From sequence record OQ708376.1: a DNA stretch of 64,000 nucleotides, one strand, 5' to 3'. Shown piece after piece: positions 13,722 through 44,306 of this stretch; within the stretch, counting starts at the first letter, position 1; each line of letters begins with the position of its first letter. The translations under genes were made by a program, and so were the position numbers. The notes below the pieces were generated by a model. That model was not told the origin of the DNA, made no database searches, and saw nothing but the letters and a program-made list of their open reading frames with translations.

Positions 13722-14702
13722 ATGGCTAAAAAAATTAATGAAGCACAAGTTAAAATCGATATCGCAGGTTTAGAATCTGATGATTTGGAAACTCTATCAC
13801 GTATGTTAGCTCTTGCTGGTCAAGCTGAACGTCAAGACCCAGTAGTTGCCGCTCCAGTACCATCTATGGGGTCTATGACTCCATCTCTTCCACCTATTGC
13901 TCCACTAGATCTCGATTCTATTGGTGCTGAAGAAGAAATTGGTGGAATTGAAACTTCAGTTGAAGACCCACTAGCAGCGGCAGTTGATGATCTTTCCGCT
14001 GATGTTGGTGATTTTGGTGCTGACACAGATGAAGTTAGTATGGATGCTGAATTTTCAGAACCAGGTGTAGAAGGTGAAGAAGATTTTTCTCTTGACCTTA
14101 GTGGTCAACCTCAACTAGAATCAGTTGAAGAAGACGATGAGGAAGAAGAAGAAATTATTGAAGAAGAATTCGATTTTAGTCGTATGCTATCTCTTGCTGG
14201 TATTAACGAAGAAGAAGACGAAGATTTTTCAGTAGAGGGTAATCCTGCTACCGATAAAGAAATGAAAGATACCCAATTTCTACCAGATCTAAGTATCTCT
14301 GAAGATGAAGAACCATCTAACAGTACTGATTATGGTCCATATGAAACAGAAGCTGATGCCGTTCGTGATGGTCAACTAAAGACTAATGGTGTTGAAGGTG
14401 ACCATTTTGTTGTAATTGCAAAAGGCAATCAATTTTATTGGAGACGTGTTGTAGATGAAGATCTTGACAATCGTCCAGAACCTGAGTATTATGATAATGA
14501 AGGGAACGAAAATCGTGTTCATAAATTTGAACCAAAATTCCCAGGCACTGCATTAGGAGATAACCCACTAAATGTTAATGAAAGTGAAGAAGATGATTCA
14601 CCTGAAGGTAACATTGACTTGGAAGATGATTCTGATGAAGAAGTAGAAGATATTTTTGAAAGTCTCCAAGAAAAATACAAGAAATTTTTAGGAGACAAAT
14701 AA
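13722..14702 (+). CDS. highly acidic protein, putative prohead core/scaffold
   Basis: Very high D/E content; KINE, GINE, SISE, NVNE and IFE motifs. Confidence 0.6.
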   Translation: MAKKINEAQVKIDIAGLESDDLETLSRMLALAGQAERQDPVVAAPVPSMGSMTPSLPPIAPLDLDSIGAEEEIGGIETSVEDPLAAAVDDLSADVGDFGADTDEVSMDAEFSEPGVEGEEDFSLDLSGQPQLESVEEDDEEEEEIIEEEFDFSRMLSLAGINEEEDEDFSVEGNPATDKEMKDTQFLPDLSISEDEEPSNSTDYGPYETEADAVRDGQLKTNGVEGDHFVVIAKGNQFYWRRVVDEDLDNRPEPEYYDNEGNENRVHKFEPKFPGTALGDNPLNVNESEEDDSPEGNIDLEDDSDEEVEDIFESLQEKYKKFLGDK

Positions 14703-14703
14703 T

Positions 14704-15099
14704 ATGCAATATAATTATCGTGAACTAGTTGAAGCGTTAGACGAAATTACCGGAAGAGATGAAGACGAAAGTTTTTCAGTTGAAGTTGAATCCGATGTTG
14801 TAGCAGTTGATGTTCTTAAGGATATTACCAAATGTCTTATTGATATTGTTGATAAGATTAAATCTGGTGAAGACCAAAAAGAAATTGTAGATAAACTACA
14901 AAAAGCCTGTGACATTTTGTCTGACATTCGATATAATGATGAAAGTACTGAAGTTGCTGATGAAGAAGTGTTGGAAGCCATTGCAGGTTGTTTTGGAACT
15001 GAAGGTATGGGACCATCAATTGACAAAGAAGGCGTACAACACTATAATGAGCCTGGTGCACCATCTTATGCTGCACGTCAAGGTTTTGTTGGAGACTAA
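14704..15099 (+). CDS. acidic hypothetical protein
   Basis: 131 aa; translationally coupled to the previous gene. Confidence 0.7.
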   Translation: MQYNYRELVEALDEITGRDEDESFSVEVESDVVAVDVLKDITKCLIDIVDKIKSGEDQKEIVDKLQKACDILSDIRYNDESTEVADEEVLEAIAGCFGTEGMGPSIDKEGVQHYNEPGAPSYAARQGFVGD

Positions 15100-15102
15100 T
15101 AT

Positions 15103-15483
15103 ATGTTTCCAGAACCATCACATAACAGTACTGAATATCAAAATAATGTACTTTCCAAAGTTAGGGAAGTACATGAATCAGATTCAGAAATAACAGACCG
15201 TATGCTTCTGATGTCAATTTTTGAAAATTTCAGAACTGGCGGTGGTTTACGTCTTAGCAAGTTTGGGTATGGAATTTGTAAAGAAAATAATCTTTATGAA
15301 TTTACCAAAATCCCCTTGCAAAGAGAATTTAAAAGTTCTATAATGTTTACATCACTTGACAGAATATGTACTTCACCTTATTATGTTGAAGGTCAGTACA
15401 TATATCTGACAGATGCAATGATAATAACTGAATTAACATTGTGTTGTGATGATTTTAAACAGTTATTTTCTATTCATATGTAA
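15103..15483 (+). CDS. hypothetical protein
   Basis: 126 aa; GGAG RBS; GLRLS...LDR...PYY pattern. Confidence 0.7.
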   Translation: MFPEPSHNSTEYQNNVLSKVREVHESDSEITDRMLLMSIFENFRTGGGLRLSKFGYGICKENNLYEFTKIPLQREFKSSIMFTSLDRICTSPYYVEGQYIYLTDAMIITELTLCCDDFKQLFSIHM

Positions 15484-15506
15484 GAAAAATGAATTAAAAA
15501 TAAATG

Positions 15507-15534
15507 TTGACAAGATAGAATGATGTGATACAAT
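15507..15534 (+). promoter_or_regulatory. sigma70-like early promoter P1
   Basis: TTGACA-N16-TACAAT with extended TG and an A-rich upstream region. Confidence 0.75.
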
Positions 15535-15599
15535 AAGCATCAGACATAAAGTTTTCAAGCGACACAAGATGTGAGTTTGAAAAAAAAGAAAAAAAGTGA

Positions 15600-15627
15600 T
15601 TGACAAGTTGAAACGATGTGATATAAT
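15600..15627 (+). promoter_or_regulatory. sigma70-like early promoter P2
   Basis: TTGACA-N16-TATAAT with extended TG and an A-tract UP-like element. Confidence 0.8.
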
Positions 15628-15688
15628 GTTCACATCAAGACAGCAAAGAGATTTACCTTTTAAACACACGGATGATTCATGAAGTAAC

Positions 15689-15735
15689 AAAGGAACTGAT
15701 AAGTTAAATTATTTTAACACAGTTCCTTTACTTTT
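15689..15735 (+). terminator. long hairpin / terminator
   Basis: AAAGGAACTG(15689-15698)...CAGTTCCTTT(15720-15729) with inner stem GTTAAA/TTTAAC, then ACTTTT. Confidence 0.6.
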
Positions 15736-15755
15736 GCCCACGGATTGGCTATAAT
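15727..15755 (+). promoter_or_regulatory. sigma70-like promoter P3 for the AAA+ gene
   Basis: TTTACT-N17-TATAAT, 41 nt before ATG 15797. Confidence 0.55.
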
Positions 15756-15796
15756 AGAAACTTAAACGATTTTATCCAACAAAAGGAAATATATAC

Positions 15797-17122
15797 ATGA
15801 CTACTCAAAACGATATCCTGAACGTTAAACTGACTCCAAAGAAAGCTAAAGAAGCAATGGCACTAGCTGACATGATTCAAGATAGCCTGATGATTTGGGG
15901 TAGCCCAGGTATCGGTAAGTCTGCAATCGCTCGTCAATACGCTGATGAAAATTACCCACTGCGTAAAGATAACGTAGCTAAAATCGAGTTCATGAAACAA
16001 CAAATCGAAGCTGACCCTGAAAATGCTGATCAGCTACGCCGTGAACTGGCTGCATTTGAAGCAAAACTAATCGACCAAGATACTAACTTTATCGATTTCC
16101 GTTTGTCTCAAATCGAACCAAGTGACCTTCGCGGTATTCCAGTACCAGAGAAGCTTTTCCGTAAAACTGACGGTTCTCTTCTGAAAGAATCTGAGCTTGC
16201 CGAAGCAAAAGATTATGTAGCTGAAACTGCGGTAGTATGGGCTGCACCTAAAGTTCTGAAATTGTCCGAAGATTGGAAAGGTGTTATTCTGTTTGACGAA
16301 ATTAACTCTGCAATGCCTATTGTTCAGGCAGCGTCTTATCAGCTAATCCTCGACCGTTGTGTTGGTGAGATGAAGCTACCTAAGACTGCACTGATTCTTG
16401 CAGCAGGTAACCGTGAAACTGATGGCGGTGTAACTTTCTCTCTTGCTACACCACTGCGTGACCGTATGACTCACATTGAGATGATTCCTTATCATCAAGA
16501 TTGGATTAACGATTATGCGATTGCAAAACGTTTGAACCCAGCAACTGTTGCGTTCATCAACAACACTGGTTCTAAGTACTTTAACACACTTAGTCCACAA
16601 GATCCTTCTCACAGTGGTGGTACTTCTCCACGTTCATGGGAAGCAGTAGCACGCTACGAAGATCTCAAGAAAACTAAGACAATTGATAAAGAAGTGTTCC
16701 GTGCAATGATTGCTGGTCGTGTTGGTGAAGGTGTTGCAACTGAATACATTGAGTACGTTGAGAACGTTGCTAAATTACCAGATACTATGTCTATTCTGTC
16801 TGGTGAAATCAAAGAAATCGACGCAACGCTGGATATTTCTGCGAACTACTTTATCACTCTGAACTTGGTTTATAAAATTATCGACCTGTTCAATGAGAAG
16901 CAAGAACAACGTCTACCAGTGGAAGAATGGGGTAAACTGTGTAACAACTTCATCACCTTCCTAGACCATAACTTCTCTGCAACTCAAGCAGAACTGGCAG
17001 TACTGGCAATTCGTACCATCACGCTTCATAAGGTTGCGATTTCCATTAAAGATGTACCAGCGTTTAAAGATTTCATCGCTAAGTACTCTGATCTTGTACG
17101 TAAAGCACGCTCTCTTGGCTAA
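15797..17122 (+). CDS. MoxR/dynein-related AAA+ ATPase (AAA_5-type)
   Basis: Walker A WGSPGIGKS; DFRLSQIEPSDLRGIP; Walker B ILFDEINSA; sensor AAGNRETD; arginine finger PLRDRM; SPRSWE. Confidence 0.9.
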   Translation: MTTQNDILNVKLTPKKAKEAMALADMIQDSLMIWGSPGIGKSAIARQYADENYPLRKDNVAKIEFMKQQIEADPENADQLRRELAAFEAKLIDQDTNFIDFRLSQIEPSDLRGIPVPEKLFRKTDGSLLKESELAEAKDYVAETAVVWAAPKVLKLSEDWKGVILFDEINSAMPIVQAASYQLILDRCVGEMKLPKTALILAAGNRETDGGVTFSLATPLRDRMTHIEMIPYHQDWINDYAIAKRLNPATVAFINNTGSKYFNTLSPQDPSHSGGTSPRSWEAVARYEDLKKTKTIDKEVFRAMIAGRVGEGVATEYIEYVENVAKLPDTMSILSGEIKEIDATLDISANYFITLNLVYKIIDLFNEKQEQRLPVEEWGKLCNNFITFLDHNFSATQAELAVLAIRTITLHKVAISIKDVPAFKDFIAKYSDLVRKARSLG

Positions 17123-17136
17123 TTAACAAAGAGTTG

Positions 17137-17171
17137 TTGACAAGAAGGATGCCTAATGGTATCCTTCTTTT
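17137..17171 (+). promoter_or_regulatory. overlapping terminator and sigma70-like promoter
   Basis: Hairpin AAGAAGGATGCC-TAAT-GGTATCCTTCTT plus TT coincides with TTGACA(17137)-N17-TATCCT(17160), which has an extended TG. Confidence 0.6.
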
Positions 17172-17196
17172 ATCTTAACTAAACGAGGAAATATAC

Positions 17197-18621
17197 ATGT
17201 CAGATAACAAATCTACTTCAAGATTCAATGAAGTATCTCCGGCACTCCAGAAAGAATGTCAAGAACGTCTGGTTCTGGCTCGTACATCTTTGATGTTAAC
17301 TGCACCATTCTTTGGTGTACTCGCTTCACGTTTACGTCCAGTTCCTAATAATACATGGTGTCGTACTCTAGCAGTGGATGGTAAACATCTATTCTACAAC
17401 GTAGAATTTGTAATGGGCATTCAAGACCCATCTAAAAAGAAAGAATATGAAGAAGCTATTCGTGAAAAGCACCCTGAAGTTACAGACGAACAATTAAAAG
17501 AAATGACTGAAGGTTTGACTGATGAAAACCTTGTTGCTGTAATTTGTCATGAAATTCTACACTGTGCTTACGATCACTTCCTTCGTCGTGGTATGCGTGA
17601 TCCACAACGTTATAACCGTGCAGCGGATTATGCCATTAACCAAATCATCGTTCGTGAGAAAATTGGGAAAATCCAAAGTTCATGGTTGTATGATAAAAAA
17701 TATGAAGGCATGACCGCAGAAGAGATTTACATTCTTCTTGAAGAAGAAGAACAAAAAGAAGATGGTGAAGGTGAAGGTCAACCACAAAGTGGCGGCGGTG
17801 AAGGTGAAGGTAAAAATCGCGGTACTTTTGGCGATATTAAAGATGGTAAGGGTAAACCAAAAGGTACTACCATTGACCAGCATGACGTTCCACAAGAAGG
17901 TCAAGAGGGTGGTTCAAGTGAACAGCAAAAACGTGATTACATGGATGATTTCAAAACAGCAATGATGAATGCTGCTCGTGCAGGTGGTACACCAGCAGAA
18001 ATCGCTCGTATGATTAACAACTTTAAAGAACCAAAGATTGACTGGCGTTCAAAACTTCAACGTACACTTCGTAGTTGGTTGAAGTCTGATGCAACATATC
18101 AAAATCCGAATCGTCGTTCTTGGGGTGCAGGTTTTGGTTCTAATGGCTCATTCTATGGTAATCCAATTTACCCAGGGATGAAACCAGATGATGATATTGA
18201 TATTGCGATTGCACTAGATGCTTCTGGGTCTATTTCTGAAGATATGCTTCGTGATTTCATTAGTGAAGTTCTTGGCATCACTAAACAATTCAAACAGTTT
18301 AAGATTCGTATCATGACTTTTGATACTGAAGTTTATACTGTAAAGGATTACAAAACTGGCGAAGAACGTAAGATTCTGGAATATCCAGTAAAAGGTGGTG
18401 GTGGTACTGACTTTGAAGCAGTATGGGTTCATATGAAGAACGACAACTACAAGCCTAAACAGCTTGTAATGTTTACTGATGGTGAACCGTGGCAGTCATG
18501 GGGTGATCCAAACTACTGTAAAACACTGTTCGTGATTCACAGTAACCCAAATAAAGTTGCACCATTTGGTGAGACTGTACACTACGAATATGAAGCTGAT
18601 AAAAAGCGTCAACGTAGTTAA
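17197..18621 (+). CDS. HExxH metallopeptidase-like domain plus C-terminal VWA domain (DUF2201-type)
   Basis: APFFG, TLAVDG, VICHEILHC (HExxH), N.AADYAIN; G/E-rich linker; MIDAS DASGS, GGGGTDF, FTDG. Confidence 0.9.
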   Translation: MSDNKSTSRFNEVSPALQKECQERLVLARTSLMLTAPFFGVLASRLRPVPNNTWCRTLAVDGKHLFYNVEFVMGIQDPSKKKEYEEAIREKHPEVTDEQLKEMTEGLTDENLVAVICHEILHCAYDHFLRRGMRDPQRYNRAADYAINQIIVREKIGKIQSSWLYDKKYEGMTAEEIYILLEEEEQKEDGEGEGQPQSGGGEGEGKNRGTFGDIKDGKGKPKGTTIDQHDVPQEGQEGGSSEQQKRDYMDDFKTAMMNAARAGGTPAEIARMINNFKEPKIDWRSKLQRTLRSWLKSDATYQNPNRRSWGAGFGSNGSFYGNPIYPGMKPDDDIDIAIALDASGSISEDMLRDFISEVLGITKQFKQFKIRIMTFDTEVYTVKDYKTGEERKILEYPVKGGGGTDFEAVWVHMKNDNYKPKQLVMFTDGEPWQSWGDPNYCKTLFVIHSNPNKVAPFGETVHYEYEADKKRQRS

Positions 18622-18633
18622 GTACTAAATAAT

Positions 18634-18663
18634 GAGAACGGAAAATTCCGTTCTCTTCTTTTA
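18634..18663 (+). terminator. intrinsic terminator after the VWA gene
   Basis: GAGAACGG-AAAATT-CCGTTCTC followed by TTCTTTT. Confidence 0.85.
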
Positions 18664-18668
18664 TAAGT

Positions 18669-18696
18669 GGGACAACTTATAAAAATATGATATAAT
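18669..18696 (+). promoter_or_regulatory. early-type promoter
   Basis: GGGACA-N16-TATAAT with TG extension; same geometry as P1, P2 and the clpA promoter. Confidence 0.5.
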
Positions 18697-18730
18697 AGTT
18701 AATGTACCAATATACATGGAGAGTATTAAA

Positions 18731-18976
18731 ATGGAACAAGAAAATAATCAAATTCAACTAACCCTTCTAGACCTAATCAATGCTGCAAAAATCATGGAAG
18801 CTGCTGTTGCACGAAACACCTTTAAAGTTGAAGAACTTGTTGAGGTTGCTCCAGTTGTATCTAAATTTGTTTCTTTTGCAAATGTAGCTCTTGAAGATAT
18901 TAAAGCACAAGAAGATGCAGCTAAAGAAGAAGCTGAATCACAAGATAGTGAAACTCAAGAAGATAAAGGAGAATAA
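18731..18976 (+). CDS. hypothetical acidic protein
   Basis: GGAG RBS before ATG 18731 (the track starts at 18716). Confidence 0.75.
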   Translation: MEQENNQIQLTLLDLINAAKIMEAAVARNTFKVEELVEVAPVVSKFVSFANVALEDIKAQEDAAKEEAESQDSETQEDKGE

Positions 18977-18978
18977 TT

Positions 18979-19635
18979 ATGGCAGCTATTCGTCATGTTG
19001 GTGTAATGCGTAATACAGGTTCTCGTGTTTTTGTTGTTTGGCGTTCACTACCAGATGATCCTGAACACTGCCTTATCGTTTATCGTGATTCACTACCAGA
19101 AGCATATGTACACGCAGTAACTGATATTGTTATGGGTCATGGTCAATCTAATATTGATTTGTGGGAAGTAATGCATAAAATTGGTTATCTCGATGGACGC
19201 AAAATGCTAGATGTTCTACACAACATGCAGCATCTACGTCGCGTTCGTACTTGTGATATTGATATGCACACTGGTGGTAATAATAAAATTTCTCTTGATG
19301 TTCTAAACAAAGCATTAGATGAAAATCAAGCGAAAGTACAAGAAGATGGTAAAGTAAAAGACTTTAACCCATTCAATCCACAAGAAGCAGACACTAAAGT
19401 AGAAGAAGCTACTATTGTAGAACAACTTCTCACTGATGCACAAAAATATGAAAAACTGGCTAAAGAACATTATGAACGTGCATACAATTTAGAGCCAAGC
19501 TTGCGTCCGCAAACACAAGTTGTTGAACAACCGAAAGATAGTAAAACAATTTATCTAGAAATTCCAGAAGGTATTTCACAGACTAAAGCTATTGAGAAAG
19601 TAAAACAACTATTTGCAGAACGTAAAGCAAAATAA
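18979..19635 (+). CDS. hypothetical protein
   Basis: 218 aa; GGAG RBS; RHVG..RNTG.RV.VVWR.LP.DP..CL N-terminus. Confidence 0.8.
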   Translation: MAAIRHVGVMRNTGSRVFVVWRSLPDDPEHCLIVYRDSLPEAYVHAVTDIVMGHGQSNIDLWEVMHKIGYLDGRKMLDVLHNMQHLRRVRTCDIDMHTGGNNKISLDVLNKALDENQAKVQEDGKVKDFNPFNPQEADTKVEEATIVEQLLTDAQKYEKLAKEHYERAYNLEPSLRPQTQVVEQPKDSKTIYLEIPEGISQTKAIEKVKQLFAERKAK

Positions 19636-19638
19636 AAT

Positions 19639-20232
19639 ATGAAAAAGAATGAATTAGATGAAGCAATTAAAGGTTTATCTAATGTATGTTTTAGTGGCGG
19701 GGCAGCAGGTGCTGACCGCCTTTTTTCTATCTATGCAAAAAATAATGGATTTGAAGTTATTAATTTTTCATTCAAAGGTCATGAGCATAGTGTAGATGAA
19801 AGTACTATATTAGAAATACCATCCAATATTCTATCTGATATTTCTATATTAAATCAACTAAACATTGCATGTTACTCGTTGCAGCGAAAAGTACCAAAAC
19901 CTGGTTCTTATGTTTACAACTTACTTGCAAGGAATAGTTATCAGATACTTAATACAGAAAGAATATATTGTATTGCAAATATCACATCACCAACTAAGGT
20001 AAGTGGTGGTACTGCATGGGCAGTACAGATGTATATGGATTCAGTTGAAAATCCTGAAATTTATTGTTATGATATGAATTCACGTTCAGTATTTTATTTC
20101 GATACAGTACTGAAAGAGTTCACACAAACATTCGTCGTTCCAGCACCACATGGTAACTGGACTGGTATTGGTTCACGCAATGCCACAGAAAAACATATGG
20201 AACATTTTATTACATTTTTCAAGGAAGAATAA
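19639..20232 (+). CDS. SLOG-superfamily-like (DprA/YspA/LOG-type Rossmannoid) protein
   Basis: CFSGGAAGADRLF and VSGGTAWAVQM match the two SLOG glycine-rich motifs; C-terminal TGIGSR. Confidence 0.55.
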   Translation: MKKNELDEAIKGLSNVCFSGGAAGADRLFSIYAKNNGFEVINFSFKGHEHSVDESTILEIPSNILSDISILNQLNIACYSLQRKVPKPGSYVYNLLARNSYQILNTERIYCIANITSPTKVSGGTAWAVQMYMDSVENPEIYCYDMNSRSVFYFDTVLKEFTQTFVVPAPHGNWTGIGSRNATEKHMEHFITFFKEE

Positions 20233-41949: not shown

Positions 41950-41977
41950 TAGACAAACCGTAAGAATGTGATATAAT
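41950..41977 (+). promoter_or_regulatory. early-type promoter for clpA
   Basis: TAGACA-N16-TATAAT with ATGTGA immediately before the -10. Confidence 0.7.
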
Positions 41978-42017: not shown

Positions 42018-44306
42018 ATGAATCTTACTCAATTGTTCAAAAAAAGCGACGAACTGGCAACATCTCTAGGTCATACATTCTTGACTATTGACCACGTAAG
42101 TGCCACAGTACTGACTATTGATAGCATCAAGAACGTATTTGAAGATATGAACATTGATGCAGACAAACTGCACAACCGCCTAATGAACTATCTTAAAAAT
42201 ACAACAGTTCCACATGCACCAAAAAGTGTTAAAGATGAAGACGCGAATCGCACTTCACTTCTAGTGAATCGCGTTGTACATGAGCTTTCTAAAAAATCAG
42301 TTATTGAACAACTAAAAAGTGATGATTTTTCGATTGATGCATATTTTGTTCTATTCGAATGTCTGTCTTTCCCTAACACAGCACTAGAAGCTGCGTTAAA
42401 AGAAGAAGGTGTTAGCTGTACTGAAGCTGCACGTGCATTACAGAAACACGTTGAGTCACTTGATAAGGGTATCAACTTACAAAGTATTAATGACGAACCG
42501 ATTGGAGATAAAAAAGTGGCCCAACAGCAGCAATCATCTAAACAAAAAGGTTTGGAAGACTATACAACGAATCTAACTGCTCTTGCAAAAGAAGGCAAAC
42601 TAGATCCTATGATTGGTCGCCAGAAAGAATTGTCTGCATTGATTGAGACTCTTGCTCGCAAAACCAAAAAGAATGCTATTCTCACTGGTGAAGCTGGTGT
42701 AGGTAAAACACAAATCATCGACGGGCTTGCACAAGCTATTGCTGATGGTAACGTACCTGAACACCTAAAAGACGTTGAAATTCTTTCACTAAATGTTGGT
42801 GCATTGACTGCTGGTACTAAGTATCGTGGTGAATTTGAAGAACGCATCGACAATTTGCTAAAAGAACTAAAGAAACGTGAAAATACTATTGTTTTCATTG
42901 ATGAAATTCATATTATGGTTGGGGCTGGTTCCGCAAGTAATGGTTCTATGGACATGAGCAATATGCTTAAGCCAGCACTTTCACGTGGTGAGATTCGTGT
43001 AATTGGTGCAACAACATATGATGAATATCGTAAAAATATCGAGAAAGATAGTGCATTAACTCGTCGTTTTATGAAAATTGACGTAGTTGAGCCGACAATT
43101 GATGAAACTCGTGCAATTGTTAATGGTTTGAAACCAACGTATGAAAAATTCCATAATGTTGAGTTCACATCTGATGCAATGGATGCTGTAATTTCTCTCA
43201 GTGATAAATTCCTGAAGAATAAGCACTTCCCAGATAAAGCAATTGATCTAATGGATGCTGCTGCGGCTAAAGTTCGTTCACGTGACAACAATAGTAAGCT
43301 TATTACTTCCAATTTGATTCAAGAAGTTGTTGCTGGTATTGCCAATTTGGATATCAACGTGGTTGCATGTACTGAAAGTGATCGTATGCGTAATCTACCA
43401 GATGCACTACGCTCACGTGTATACGGTCAAGAGGAAGCTATTCAAAAATTAGTTGATAACGTGATGGTAGCTCGTGCAGGACTGCGTGACAAATCTAGTG
43501 TTCAGGGTGCATTTATGTTTGTTGGACCATCTGGTACTGGTAAAACAGAAATTACCAAAGCATTAGCAGACGCAACTGGTGCGGAACTCATTCGCTTTGA
43601 TATGTCAGAATTTTCTCAAGAACATACTGTTTCTAAACTAATTGGTTCACCTCCAGGTTATGTTGGTCATGATTCTGGTAACGGTTTACTGTTGGATAAA
43701 ATTGAGCAGTTCCCTAATGCAGTACTGTTACTTGATGAAATTGAAAAAGCAGATCGTAAAGTACTACTAACCTTCCTACAGGTTTTGGATGAAGGTCGTC
43801 TGACTGGTTCTCAAGGTAAAACTGTATATTTTAATAACGTAACTGTTATTATGACTACAAACCTTGGTGCGGCTGATTCAACAAAGCGTAGCATTGGTAT
43901 GAGCGGTAGTGACACTGCACAGGACAAGGCAATTAAAGCATTCTTGCCACCAGAGTTTATTAACCGTATTGATAGTATCGTTACGTTTAAAGACCTAAGC
44001 AGTGAAGCTATTGACAGCATCATTGATAAGTTCATGGGTGGTTTGAATGAACAAGTCAAAGACCGTAATGTTAAAGTTACATTGACAAAAGCTGCACGTG
44101 AATGGCTTGCGAAAAATGGGGTAAAAGTTGGTATGGGTGCACGTCCAATGAAACGTACCATTGAACAAAACATTCGTGTACCACTAGCTAAAGAAATGTT
44201 GTGTGGTTCACTTGTGAATGGTGGTAACATTACATTTGATGTTATTGATGGTAAAATCGGTATTAAGCCGAAACGTACCAAAGCTGTAGATAAAGCACTA
44301 GTATAA
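42018..44306 (+). CDS. clpA: ClpA-like AAA+ protease ATPase subunit
   Basis: Clp N-domain ([10 protein letters not shown]); AAA1 [35 protein letters not shown]; AAA2 [22 protein letters not shown]; no M-domain; ATG 42018 after GGAG. Confidence 0.9.

Follow-up and report, generated by a model that had tools for sequence, protein, structure and literature searches.

What do two neighboring genes, one encoding an AAA+ ATPase and the other a metallopeptidase fused to a VWA domain, do for the jumbo phage that carries them? The question is raised by a 64,000-nt stretch of sequence record OQ708376.1 (here referred to as the window, meaning the whole stretch that was analyzed), which belongs to an Escherichia coli jumbo phage of the PBECO4/121Q type (Asteriusvirus, Rak2-like) and is, over positions 15500-18900, 100% identical to PBECO4 and several further records. 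A preliminary description, made from the letters of the window alone, presented the two genes as an early-expressed and undescribed system in which the peptidase cleaves a client threaded by the ATPase. Both are intact open reading frames (ORFs) on the plus strand and lie exactly where that description placed them, gene 1 at 15797..17122 (441 aa) and gene 2 at 17197..18621 (474 aa); the motifs, domains, hairpins, and promoter candidates of the pair given below are on the same strand. Here, we report the domain identities, catalytic residues, pairing and co-evolution, and distribution of the two proteins, which are homologous to gp24 and gp25 of phage N4. Whether this jumbo-phage form of N4 gp24/gp25 is a two-component, ATP-driven machine that remodels a target protein and then clips it is, in our judgment, about an even call.

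The product of gene 1 is a MoxR-class AAA+ ATPase of the helix-2-insert/pre-sensor-1 hairpin clade and a member of the N4 gp24 family (phrog_1297, "ATPase," E = 3e-107; G7C gp24, E = 7e-25). Its Walker A motif (GSPGIGKS, residues 35-42; 15899..15922) has G38, K41, and S42 invariant in 41 sequences, and in its Walker B motif (VILFDE, residues 163-168; 16283..16300) E168 is invariant and D167 nearly so. K41, S42, E168, N205, R223, and R279 are invariant across the 41-homolog alignment, in keeping with the intact ATPase reported earlier; by analogy, we take N205 to be the sensor-1 Asn, R223 (in PLRDRM) the Arg finger, and R279 (in SPRSW, in the lid) the sensor-2 Arg. The segment made up of Asn205 and the post-sensor-1 loop (NRETDGGVTFSLA; 16409..16447), in which N205, D209, and G211 are invariant, contains one of the most conserved stretches of the ATPase, the loop, which is disordered in the monomer model (predicted local distance difference test [pLDDT] score of <50 at residues 209-217). 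The AlphaFold model as a whole (pLDDT, 85.5) has an AAA+ core and a helical lid, and DSSP assigns to it a short hairpin (188-193) preceding strand 199-205, that is, a pre-sensor-1 hairpin. Its best PDB folds in Foldseek are NorQ and NorQ-NorD complexes (E = 6e-7 to 1e-6; template modeling [TM] score by target, 0.52-0.60), with CbbQ2 at a TM score of 0.58; a clamp loader and McrB come near in E value but have far worse TM scores. PDB sequence searches with both whole proteins gave chance-level matches only, and an NCBIfam scan of the pair gave no match.

The two insertions reported in the preliminary description proved real, with ~42 aa following the Walker A helix and another ~20 aa ahead of Walker B, and are confined to the ATPases of the jumbo-phage clade; MIJ3/PA5oct, N4-like gp24, and remoter homologs lack them. 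The first (residues ~53-95; 15953..16081) forms two helices (DSSP, 56-72 and 74-90) between the Walker A helix and beta2, measures 45-68 aa in the jumbo clade versus 6 aligned residues elsewhere, and appears as a gap when the window ATPase is aligned to G7C gp24 or the MIJ3 ATPase. The second sits at the tip of the helix-2-insert beta-hairpin (residues 114-149; 16136..16243; DSSP strands 114-123 and 140-149), which the model places between beta2 and Walker B. The hairpin is 37-50 aa long in the jumbo clade versus mostly 14-19 aa in homologs without insertion 1, where there are two outliers of 28 and 70 aa. After beta2 the chain reads DLRGIP and then runs into a hairpin with a charged tip; no aromatic-hydrophobic-Gly pore-loop motif was read in the aligned ATPase blocks.

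The product of gene 2 (N4 gp25 family; phrog_1314) consists of an N-terminal zincin domain, a disordered linker, and a VWA domain with a metal ion-dependent adhesion site (MIDAS). It matches G7C gp25 over its full length, including HExxH and MIDAS (E = 1e-26), and carries PF13203 (DUF2201_N, "putative metallopeptidase"; E = 2e-35, 123.2 bits against a cutoff of 23.2) followed C-terminally by PF09967 (DUF2201, "VWA-like"; E = 7e-21, 75.1 bits against 26.4). The AlphaFold model (pLDDT, 74.6) shows a helical N-terminal domain, the linker, a second disordered loop, and a compact VWA fold. These features agree with the HExxH motif, flexible G/E linker, and intact MIDAS VWA domain that had been read from the sequence. 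The linker (residues ~190-240; 17764..17916; pLDDT <50) is G/E rich and present family-wide at lengths of 37-77 aa. The second disordered loop (residues 297-329; 18085..18183; pLDDT <50) precedes the VWA domain, retains R306, W309, P326, and G327, and is 24, 29, or 34 aa long depending on subclade, with a single sequence at 37. The VWA domain itself (residues 330-467; 18184..18597) was matched by VIA to the VWA domains of integrin I, collagen VI, and CLCA1 (Z = 10-12) and to that of NorD (9qh8_G; Z = 10.6); D341, S343, S345, T404, and D428 of its MIDAS, the DxSxS part of which lies at 18217-18231, are all invariant.

The zincin domain (residues 1-190; 17197..17766) contains HEILH as its HExxH motif (residues 118-122; 17548-17562), and H118, E119, H122, H127, and R130 are invariant across alignments. 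A helical insertion of 32 aa (residues ~75-107) precedes the motif and measures 39-42 aa in the jumbo clade versus 8 aa elsewhere. Whole-chain fold searches (Foldseek and VIA wide) were swamped by the VWA domain and uninformative on this part of the protein, so the zincin domain was instead profiled against PDB sequences. The profile matched the M48 peptidase 3c37 and the minimal metallopeptidase selecase MJ1213 (E ~1e-3), with the match spanning a strand and the HExxH helix; an ESM Atlas search with the domain returned unnamed clusters only. The same residues bear on the idea that the pair is a chaperone for metal-cofactor insertion or enzyme activation, like NorQD, CbbQO, or the chelatases, in which the HExxH domain would serve to bind a metal or a client on behalf of a phage metalloenzyme (such as one of nucleotide metabolism) instead of acting as a protease. 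Most characterized MoxR-VWA pairs do insert metals or activate enzymes, and the G7C and Rak2-like pairs lie within a few kilobases of thymidylate synthase or dCTP deaminase genes. However, no sequence in the alignments examined departs from the catalytic Glu of HExxH, which is what one would expect of an active peptidase; the profile likeness is to true M48 and selecase peptidases; and the thymidylate synthase link is absent in rV5-like and PA5oct-like phages and on plasmids. We assign this chaperone role the lowest probability of all the explanations considered.

The two genes belong together. All 26 genome or metagenome loci in which the upstream sequence was long enough (loci are labeled L plus a number below) have the ATPase gene 5' of the peptidase gene on the same strand, an order also found in G7C, MIJ3, PA5oct, CBB, and two plasmids; in rV5-like phages, a homologous MoxR gene lies 3.6 kb off on the opposite strand. 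Over 30 loci, the divergences of ATPase and partner are strongly correlated (Mantel r = 0.92; 0 of 2,000 permutations as high), partly through the shared ancestry of the genomes. The two trees are congruent and share one fully supported deep split, with large phages on one side (the window, CBB, MIJ3, rV5-like phages, and metagenomic contigs) and N4-like phages, plasmids, alphaproteobacterial elements, and Saccharibacteria contigs on the other. Judged by these comparisons, the proteins are a functional, co-diverging pair, and the preliminary reading stands in that a MoxR-type ATPase is matched with its own VWA/MIDAS protein, to which a zincin is fused. The "anti-sigma factor" beside the peptidase gene in rV5-type phages was considered as a partner and rejected, as it has no homology to the ATPase. 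Selfish elements separate the pair genes in several places: an HNH homing endonuclease in G7C (L003 5967-6443), a homing endonuclease in PA5oct/MIJ3 (L037 7451-8947), and an IS21 element on plasmid pBcp895-1 (L038 6350-8469).

The distribution of the family is wide. By tblastn, the peptidase-VWA protein occurs in 685 phage records from Rak2-like, rV5-like, N4-like, and PA5oct-like phages, and a profile search found 25,193 representatives of 50% identity clusters at E ≤1e-3 and 18,529 at E ≤1e-10. The pair is also found in prophage-like elements and on 76 plasmids, mostly large Burkholderiales replicons, of which 29 are predicted to be conjugative. On pBcp895-1, it lies directly 5' of a type IV secretion system (T4SS) operon; on pBB2, where homology was confirmed for both plasmid proteins, the surrounding block also includes a PRTRC/ThiF cassette and DUF3085 and DUF4313 genes. 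In a Brucella pecoris element, the pair adjoins genes for a DNA ligase and a sliding-clamp-like protein, and in G7C its neighbors are RNAP2 subunits, dCTP deaminase, and thymidylate synthase. A 137.6-kb E. coli "plasmid" (CP057073.1, 46443-47873) has a copy with the identity and coverage of rV5-like phages; the record may be that of a phage genome deposited under the wrong label. One Haliscomenobacter metagenome-assembled genome has two separate pair loci (L009 and L011); the contigs that carry them (23 kb and 183 kb) may both derive from phages and have been binned together.

The pair is not undescribed, as had been thought, but is already known from annotation and comparative genomics. N4 gp24 and gp25 both belong to the 14-gene core of N4-like phages (PMC4193335), and Iyer et al. 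(2021) reported that group 2.2 jumbo phages carry a MoxR AAA+/vWA pair with a metallopeptidase fused to the N terminus of the vWA protein (PMC7824862). The pair of N4-like phages (Schitoviridae) has both families in the same gene order and on the same strand as the window pair; it differs in lacking all three clade-specific insertions (both of those in the ATPase and that preceding HExxH), in falling in the other deep branch of the trees, and in lacking the conserved five-gene block that the pair forms in the window with o126, o86, and o218 (see below). The group 2.2 pair has the architecture seen in the window and comes from the same phage group. Orthologs in phage Munch, AZU98186.1 and AZU98187.1, share 74% and 70% identity with their window counterparts, and the closeness of their accession numbers to that of the cited AZU98290.1 suggests that Munch is likely in group 2.2; of the example accessions in the same paper (ASV44729.1 and ASV44728.2), a cluster look-up for ASV44729.1 gave no match. 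The phAPEC6 record names the orthologs "MoxR ATPase" (gene 1) and "N4 gp25-like protein" (gene 2). Thus, the description of the window pair was a correct rediscovery of a feature that had been annotated and discussed.

Elsewhere in public records, the label of gene 1 is "ATPase," and gene 2 is called "HNH endonuclease," "Zn-dependent hydrolase (T4-gp25-like)," or "hypothetical protein." Wrong names for the peptidase-VWA protein are spreading. "HNH endonuclease" is also the label of phrog_1314, "T4-gp25-like" is a mix-up of N4 gp25 with T4 gp25, and "DNA repair ATPase" (MIJ3) and "putative membrane protein" (CBB) are further examples.

The closest solved folds for the window ATPase, those of the NorQ-NorD and CbbQ-CbbO systems, are likely, by analogy, to be the model for docking and force transmission in the window pair. 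In structures of NorQ-NorD (2026), a finger of the VWA protein sits in the AAA+ pore, where it is gripped by helix-2 inserts, the NorD C terminus binds the NorQ post-sensor-1 loop, and ATP-driven rotation stretches the linker to the N-terminal domain of the adaptor (PMC13036017). The authors presume that the finger-in-pore mode is general to AAA+/VWA pairs (PMC13036017). NorD shares the layout of the gene 2 product (N-terminal domain, linker, and VWA). Unlike it, NorD and CbbO lack a peptidase, and they serve metalloenzymes as clients (nitric oxide reductase [NOR] and Rubisco); sequence identity to the window pair is just 11-15%. Since the window pair has parts that match those of NorQ-NorD, namely, the helix-2-insert hairpin, the conserved post-sensor-1 loop, and an adaptor built of N-terminal domain, linker, and VWA, we favor remodeling and clipping over threading.

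The favored mechanism would run as follows. The gene 1 product would be the MoxR-class motor, presumably hexameric, and the gene 2 product its dedicated adaptor, with a VWA/MIDAS part tethered by the long disordered linker to an N-terminal zincin endopeptidase. As in NorQ-NorD and CbbQ-CbbO, the VWA part would dock on the ring, an extended adaptor element would enter a pore lined with helix-2-insert hairpins, and a second adaptor contact would form at the conserved post-sensor-1 loop; the disordered loop at residues 297-329 is our candidate for the pore "finger." The MIDAS metal may then hold a specific target protein by one of its acidic residues. ATP hydrolysis would twist and stretch the adaptor linker, by which the target would be remodeled and offered to the zincin for limited, site-specific cleavage; alternatively, the twisting of the linker may un-gate the peptidase. 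The two genes would be transcribed jointly from one or more sigma70-like promoters, with the conserved intercistronic hairpin probably cutting the dose of adaptor relative to motor. The proteins would be made in the middle period and would meet a conserved housekeeping need of a mobile element inside the cell.

The preliminary description had instead put forward an early ATP-dependent unfoldase-protease by which host complexes or defense proteins are threaded through the AAA+ pore and degraded. Extended -10 sigma70-like promoters upstream of the pair, a host-ward composition in the window that is strong in MIJ3, and the sharing of the pair by phages and conjugative plasmids, which both face host defenses, speak for it. 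The architecture of the proteins speaks against it. Known MoxR-VWA machines thread no clients, and in the solved complexes the adaptor finger fills the pore (PMC13036017). The window ATPase has no aromatic-hydrophobic pore loop, and its pore-lining hairpin carries a charged insertion. In FtsH and Lon, which likewise bring an AAA+ ATPase and a peptidase (in FtsH, an HExxH zincin) into one system, each motor subunit has the peptidase fused to it, a chamber lies beneath the ring, and the substrate is threaded by aromatic pore loops. The window pair is unlike FtsH, Lon, and ClpXP in that its motor is of the helix-2-insert clade and its peptidase belongs to a separate adaptor protein, where a disordered linker of ~50 aa sets it apart, with no proteolytic chamber under the ring. 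Moreover, the pair is a conserved core pair, not a patchy accessory, neither protein has a PADLOC match, and the timing in relatives is middle, not early. In our favored reading, the pair is not a processive threading protease, and we consider the early unfoldase-protease as a whole improbable.

Several points weigh against the remodel-and-clip machine. The hexamer, docking mode, and proteolysis, which we infer along with the stoichiometry control and the target class, rest on analogy. The compact VWA fold has no obvious finger insertion, which makes the choice of the 297-329 loop a guess. The window ATPase falls below the Pfam cutoffs for AAA_3 (16.7 bits; cutoff, 27) and AAA_5 (15.6; cutoff, 22), and generic AAA is the sole AAA model that it passes (21.3 versus 21.2); homologs at ~30% identity carry AAA_3 and AAA_5, and the plasmid homolog scores 26.9 for AAA_5. 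In the literature on DUF2201, PF13203, PF09967, and COG3864, no functional test of any member was found. The remaining points would suit a morphogenetic role. The phAPEC6 ATPase gp265c was detected by mass spectrometry in purified virions (6 peptides; 19% coverage), and the PA5oct ATPase EST35_0335 is flagged "ESI-MS/MS" (purified virions). In Rak2-like phages, the pair is located beside virion genes for structural proteins and tail fibers, and the adjacency of the pair to the T4SS operon on pBcp895-1 could equally mean that it helps to assemble a large machine.

These observations, together with the core status of the pair in N4-like phages, are what recommends the role put forward by Iyer et al. 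(2021; PMC7824862), a virion-assembly chaperone and maturation protease that would help to build head, tail, or fiber and whose zincin would trim structural proteins. The precedent cited is p618/p892 of ATV, a virus-encoded MoxR and VWA pair with a morphogenetic role, to which the window pair would add a peptidase; ATV p618/p892, compared here by description only, has no peptidase domain and acts in the extracellular tail growth of an archaeal virus. However, thymidylate synthase, SSB, or RNase H was found in the same phAPEC6 and PA5oct preparations, which makes a carryover of abundant nonstructural proteins likely. None of the three virion data sets examined (phAPEC6, PA5oct, and CBB) flags or lists the peptidase-VWA partner, and the CBB virion mass spectrometry table contains neither CBB_216 nor CBB_217. 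In addition, the N4 homologs are middle genes amid genes of nucleotide metabolism, and the pair occurs on plasmids and in DNA-metabolism contexts without a virion. These contexts speak for a basic job of the family that is not tied to virions and make the proposed role less general, with use in virion assembly possible in particular phages. As an account of the pair, virion assembly is a possibility that we hold to be doubtful, although it is the strongest competitor to the remodel-and-clip machine.

For the remodel-and-clip machine, we lean toward a target that is not part of the virion, is common to phages and conjugative plasmids, and acts at a step of establishment or replication. A further reading, which we hold to be unlikely, makes the pair an establishment factor of incoming virulent phages and conjugative plasmids, an ATP-gated, MIDAS-targeted, site-specific protease that would cut one conserved host protein (of defense or housekeeping) soon after DNA entry, with the downstream neighbors o86 and o218 as cofactors or regulators in the large-phage branch. 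The presence of the pair on conjugative plasmids backs the idea of a host or defense target a little, and indirectly, and its core rather than variable accessory status argues against a classical anti-defense role. A search for literature linking the pair to plasmid leading regions or PRTRC found nothing relevant. In the vWA-MoxR-VMAP ternary conflict systems (Kaur et al. 2020; PMC7159879), a MoxR and vWA core is likewise present, and the vWA protein is fused to effector domains, among which a metallopeptidase is rare. Those systems are cellular and of defense type and have a third, VMAP component; none is evident at the window locus, where no dedicated VMAP profile search was made. Identification of the target would fill a remaining gap in the core biology of these phages and would reveal how a MoxR-VWA motor acts when its adaptor bears a protease. 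Carriers of the pair (rV5-like, Rak2-like, and PA5oct-like phages) include several candidates for phage therapy.

How the pair is expressed bears on both timing and dose. The two genes have the ribosome-binding site contexts GGAAATATATACATG and GGAAATATACATG, as noted before. Three sigma70-like promoter candidates precede gene 1: TTGACA-16-TACAAT with an extended -10 TG (15507..15534; score, 11/12; intergenic), TTGACA-16-TATAAT with an extended -10 (15600..15627; 12/12; intergenic), and a proximal, weaker candidate, TTTACT-17-TATAAT, 42 nt before the ATG (15727..15755; 10/12). The first two have the common motif TTGACAAG...GATGTGATAyAAT. Across the window, sites scoring at least 11/12 number 10, against a simulated mean of 4.8 and maximum of 11, so there is no clear overall enrichment. 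Six of these 10 strongest sites crowd into 14464-15627 on the plus strand, and 4 of the 6 fall inside ORFs (13722-15483) that PHROG annotates as "virion structural protein" or as of unknown function. Another site, at 41950-41977, has the same extended -10 (AATGTGATATAAT) as the 15507 and 15600 sites and lies 41 nt 5' of a 762-aa ORF (42018-44306); the likeness suggests, from sequence, a shared promoter class.

Between the promoters and gene 1 lies a leader hairpin with a T-rich tail (15690..15729; RNA fold z, -2.5), possibly an attenuator or the end of a short transcript or small RNA. The layout of promoter, hairpin with T run, and ATPase gene (window, 15600-15736) recurs in CBB (L036 4553-4647), the pair proteins of which are ~60% identical to those of the window. 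The nucleotide sequences are unrelated, the leader is ~100 nt in the window and shorter in CBB, and the CBB promoter also has an extended -10.

Each gene is followed by a hairpin, as claimed, at 17142..17169 (12-bp stem, weak T tail; fold z, -5.2) and 18634..18655. The first is probably a partial terminator or RNA stability element and has a CBB counterpart in the equivalent intercistronic place (L036 6042-6060), within a 41-bp spacer. The second, a bidirectional terminator-like hairpin with a 9-bp stem followed by TTCTTTTATA, has its CBB counterpart at L036 7446-7467. The claim that each gene has its own host-type promoter was not confirmed: gene 1 has the three candidates given above, and the candidate of gene 2 (TTGACA-17-TATCCT; 17137-17165) overlaps the terminator-like hairpin. 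Given this overlap, and given that the CBB spacer holds the hairpin alone and is too short for a promoter, we read the pair as one cotranscribed unit with a partial stop, which would fit a motor-to-adaptor ratio well above one.

Early expression had been proposed on the basis of promoter type alone, and data from relatives do not support it. N4 gp24/gp25 are middle transcripts (PMC4193335). In PA5oct, the early class comprises gp34-105 and gp450, and the pair orthologs, gp335 and gp340, lie outside it; host RNA polymerase is needed throughout infection in this phage, and sigma70-like motifs are found at its mapped start sites. Since the T4-type late promoter motif TATAAATA occurs just once in the 64 kb, the window offers no internal control for late genes. 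An Rfam scan of the whole window gave no match.

The distinct composition noted for the pair was confirmed. The GC content at third codon positions (GC3) of the ATPase gene, 0.345, is the highest of the 41 window genes (median, 0.199), and that of gene 2, 0.26, ranks fifth of 41. In MIJ3, the pair has GC3 values of 0.67 and 0.51 (L005 1991-3106 and 5992-7176) versus ~0.20 in its neighbors, and is nonetheless placed in the large-phage branch in both trees. The shift is absent from the CBB and G7C pairs; transfer or codon adaptation may be its cause.

Three neighbors of the pair, all on the plus strand, are conserved in the large-phage branch: upstream o126 (15103..15483; phrog_15638) and downstream o86 (18716..18976), which has an acidic C-terminal tail, and o218 (18979..19635; phrog_15894). 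Homologs of o126 lie near the ATPase gene in relatives, immediately 5' of it in CBB, L006, L007, L014, and L033 and farther 5' in L008. Both o86 and o218 follow the pair in CBB, L006, L011, L012, L014, and L016, and o218 without o86 is downstream in L007 and L008. Members of the o126/o86/o218 block are nearby but inverted in MIJ3 and PA5oct, and all three are absent around the pair in N4-like phages, in rV5-like phages, and on plasmids. The flanking ORFs have no Pfam family, and an ESM Atlas search with o218 returned unnamed clusters only. The downstream neighbors o86 and o218 are possible candidates for partners or substrates of the pair. Farther downstream, directly 5' of the thymidylate synthase gene, a 197-aa ORF (19639-20232) has a match at E = 1e-26 to the PHROG family "DprA-like DNA recombination-mediator protein" and a weak one to a Pfam model of the SLOG family.

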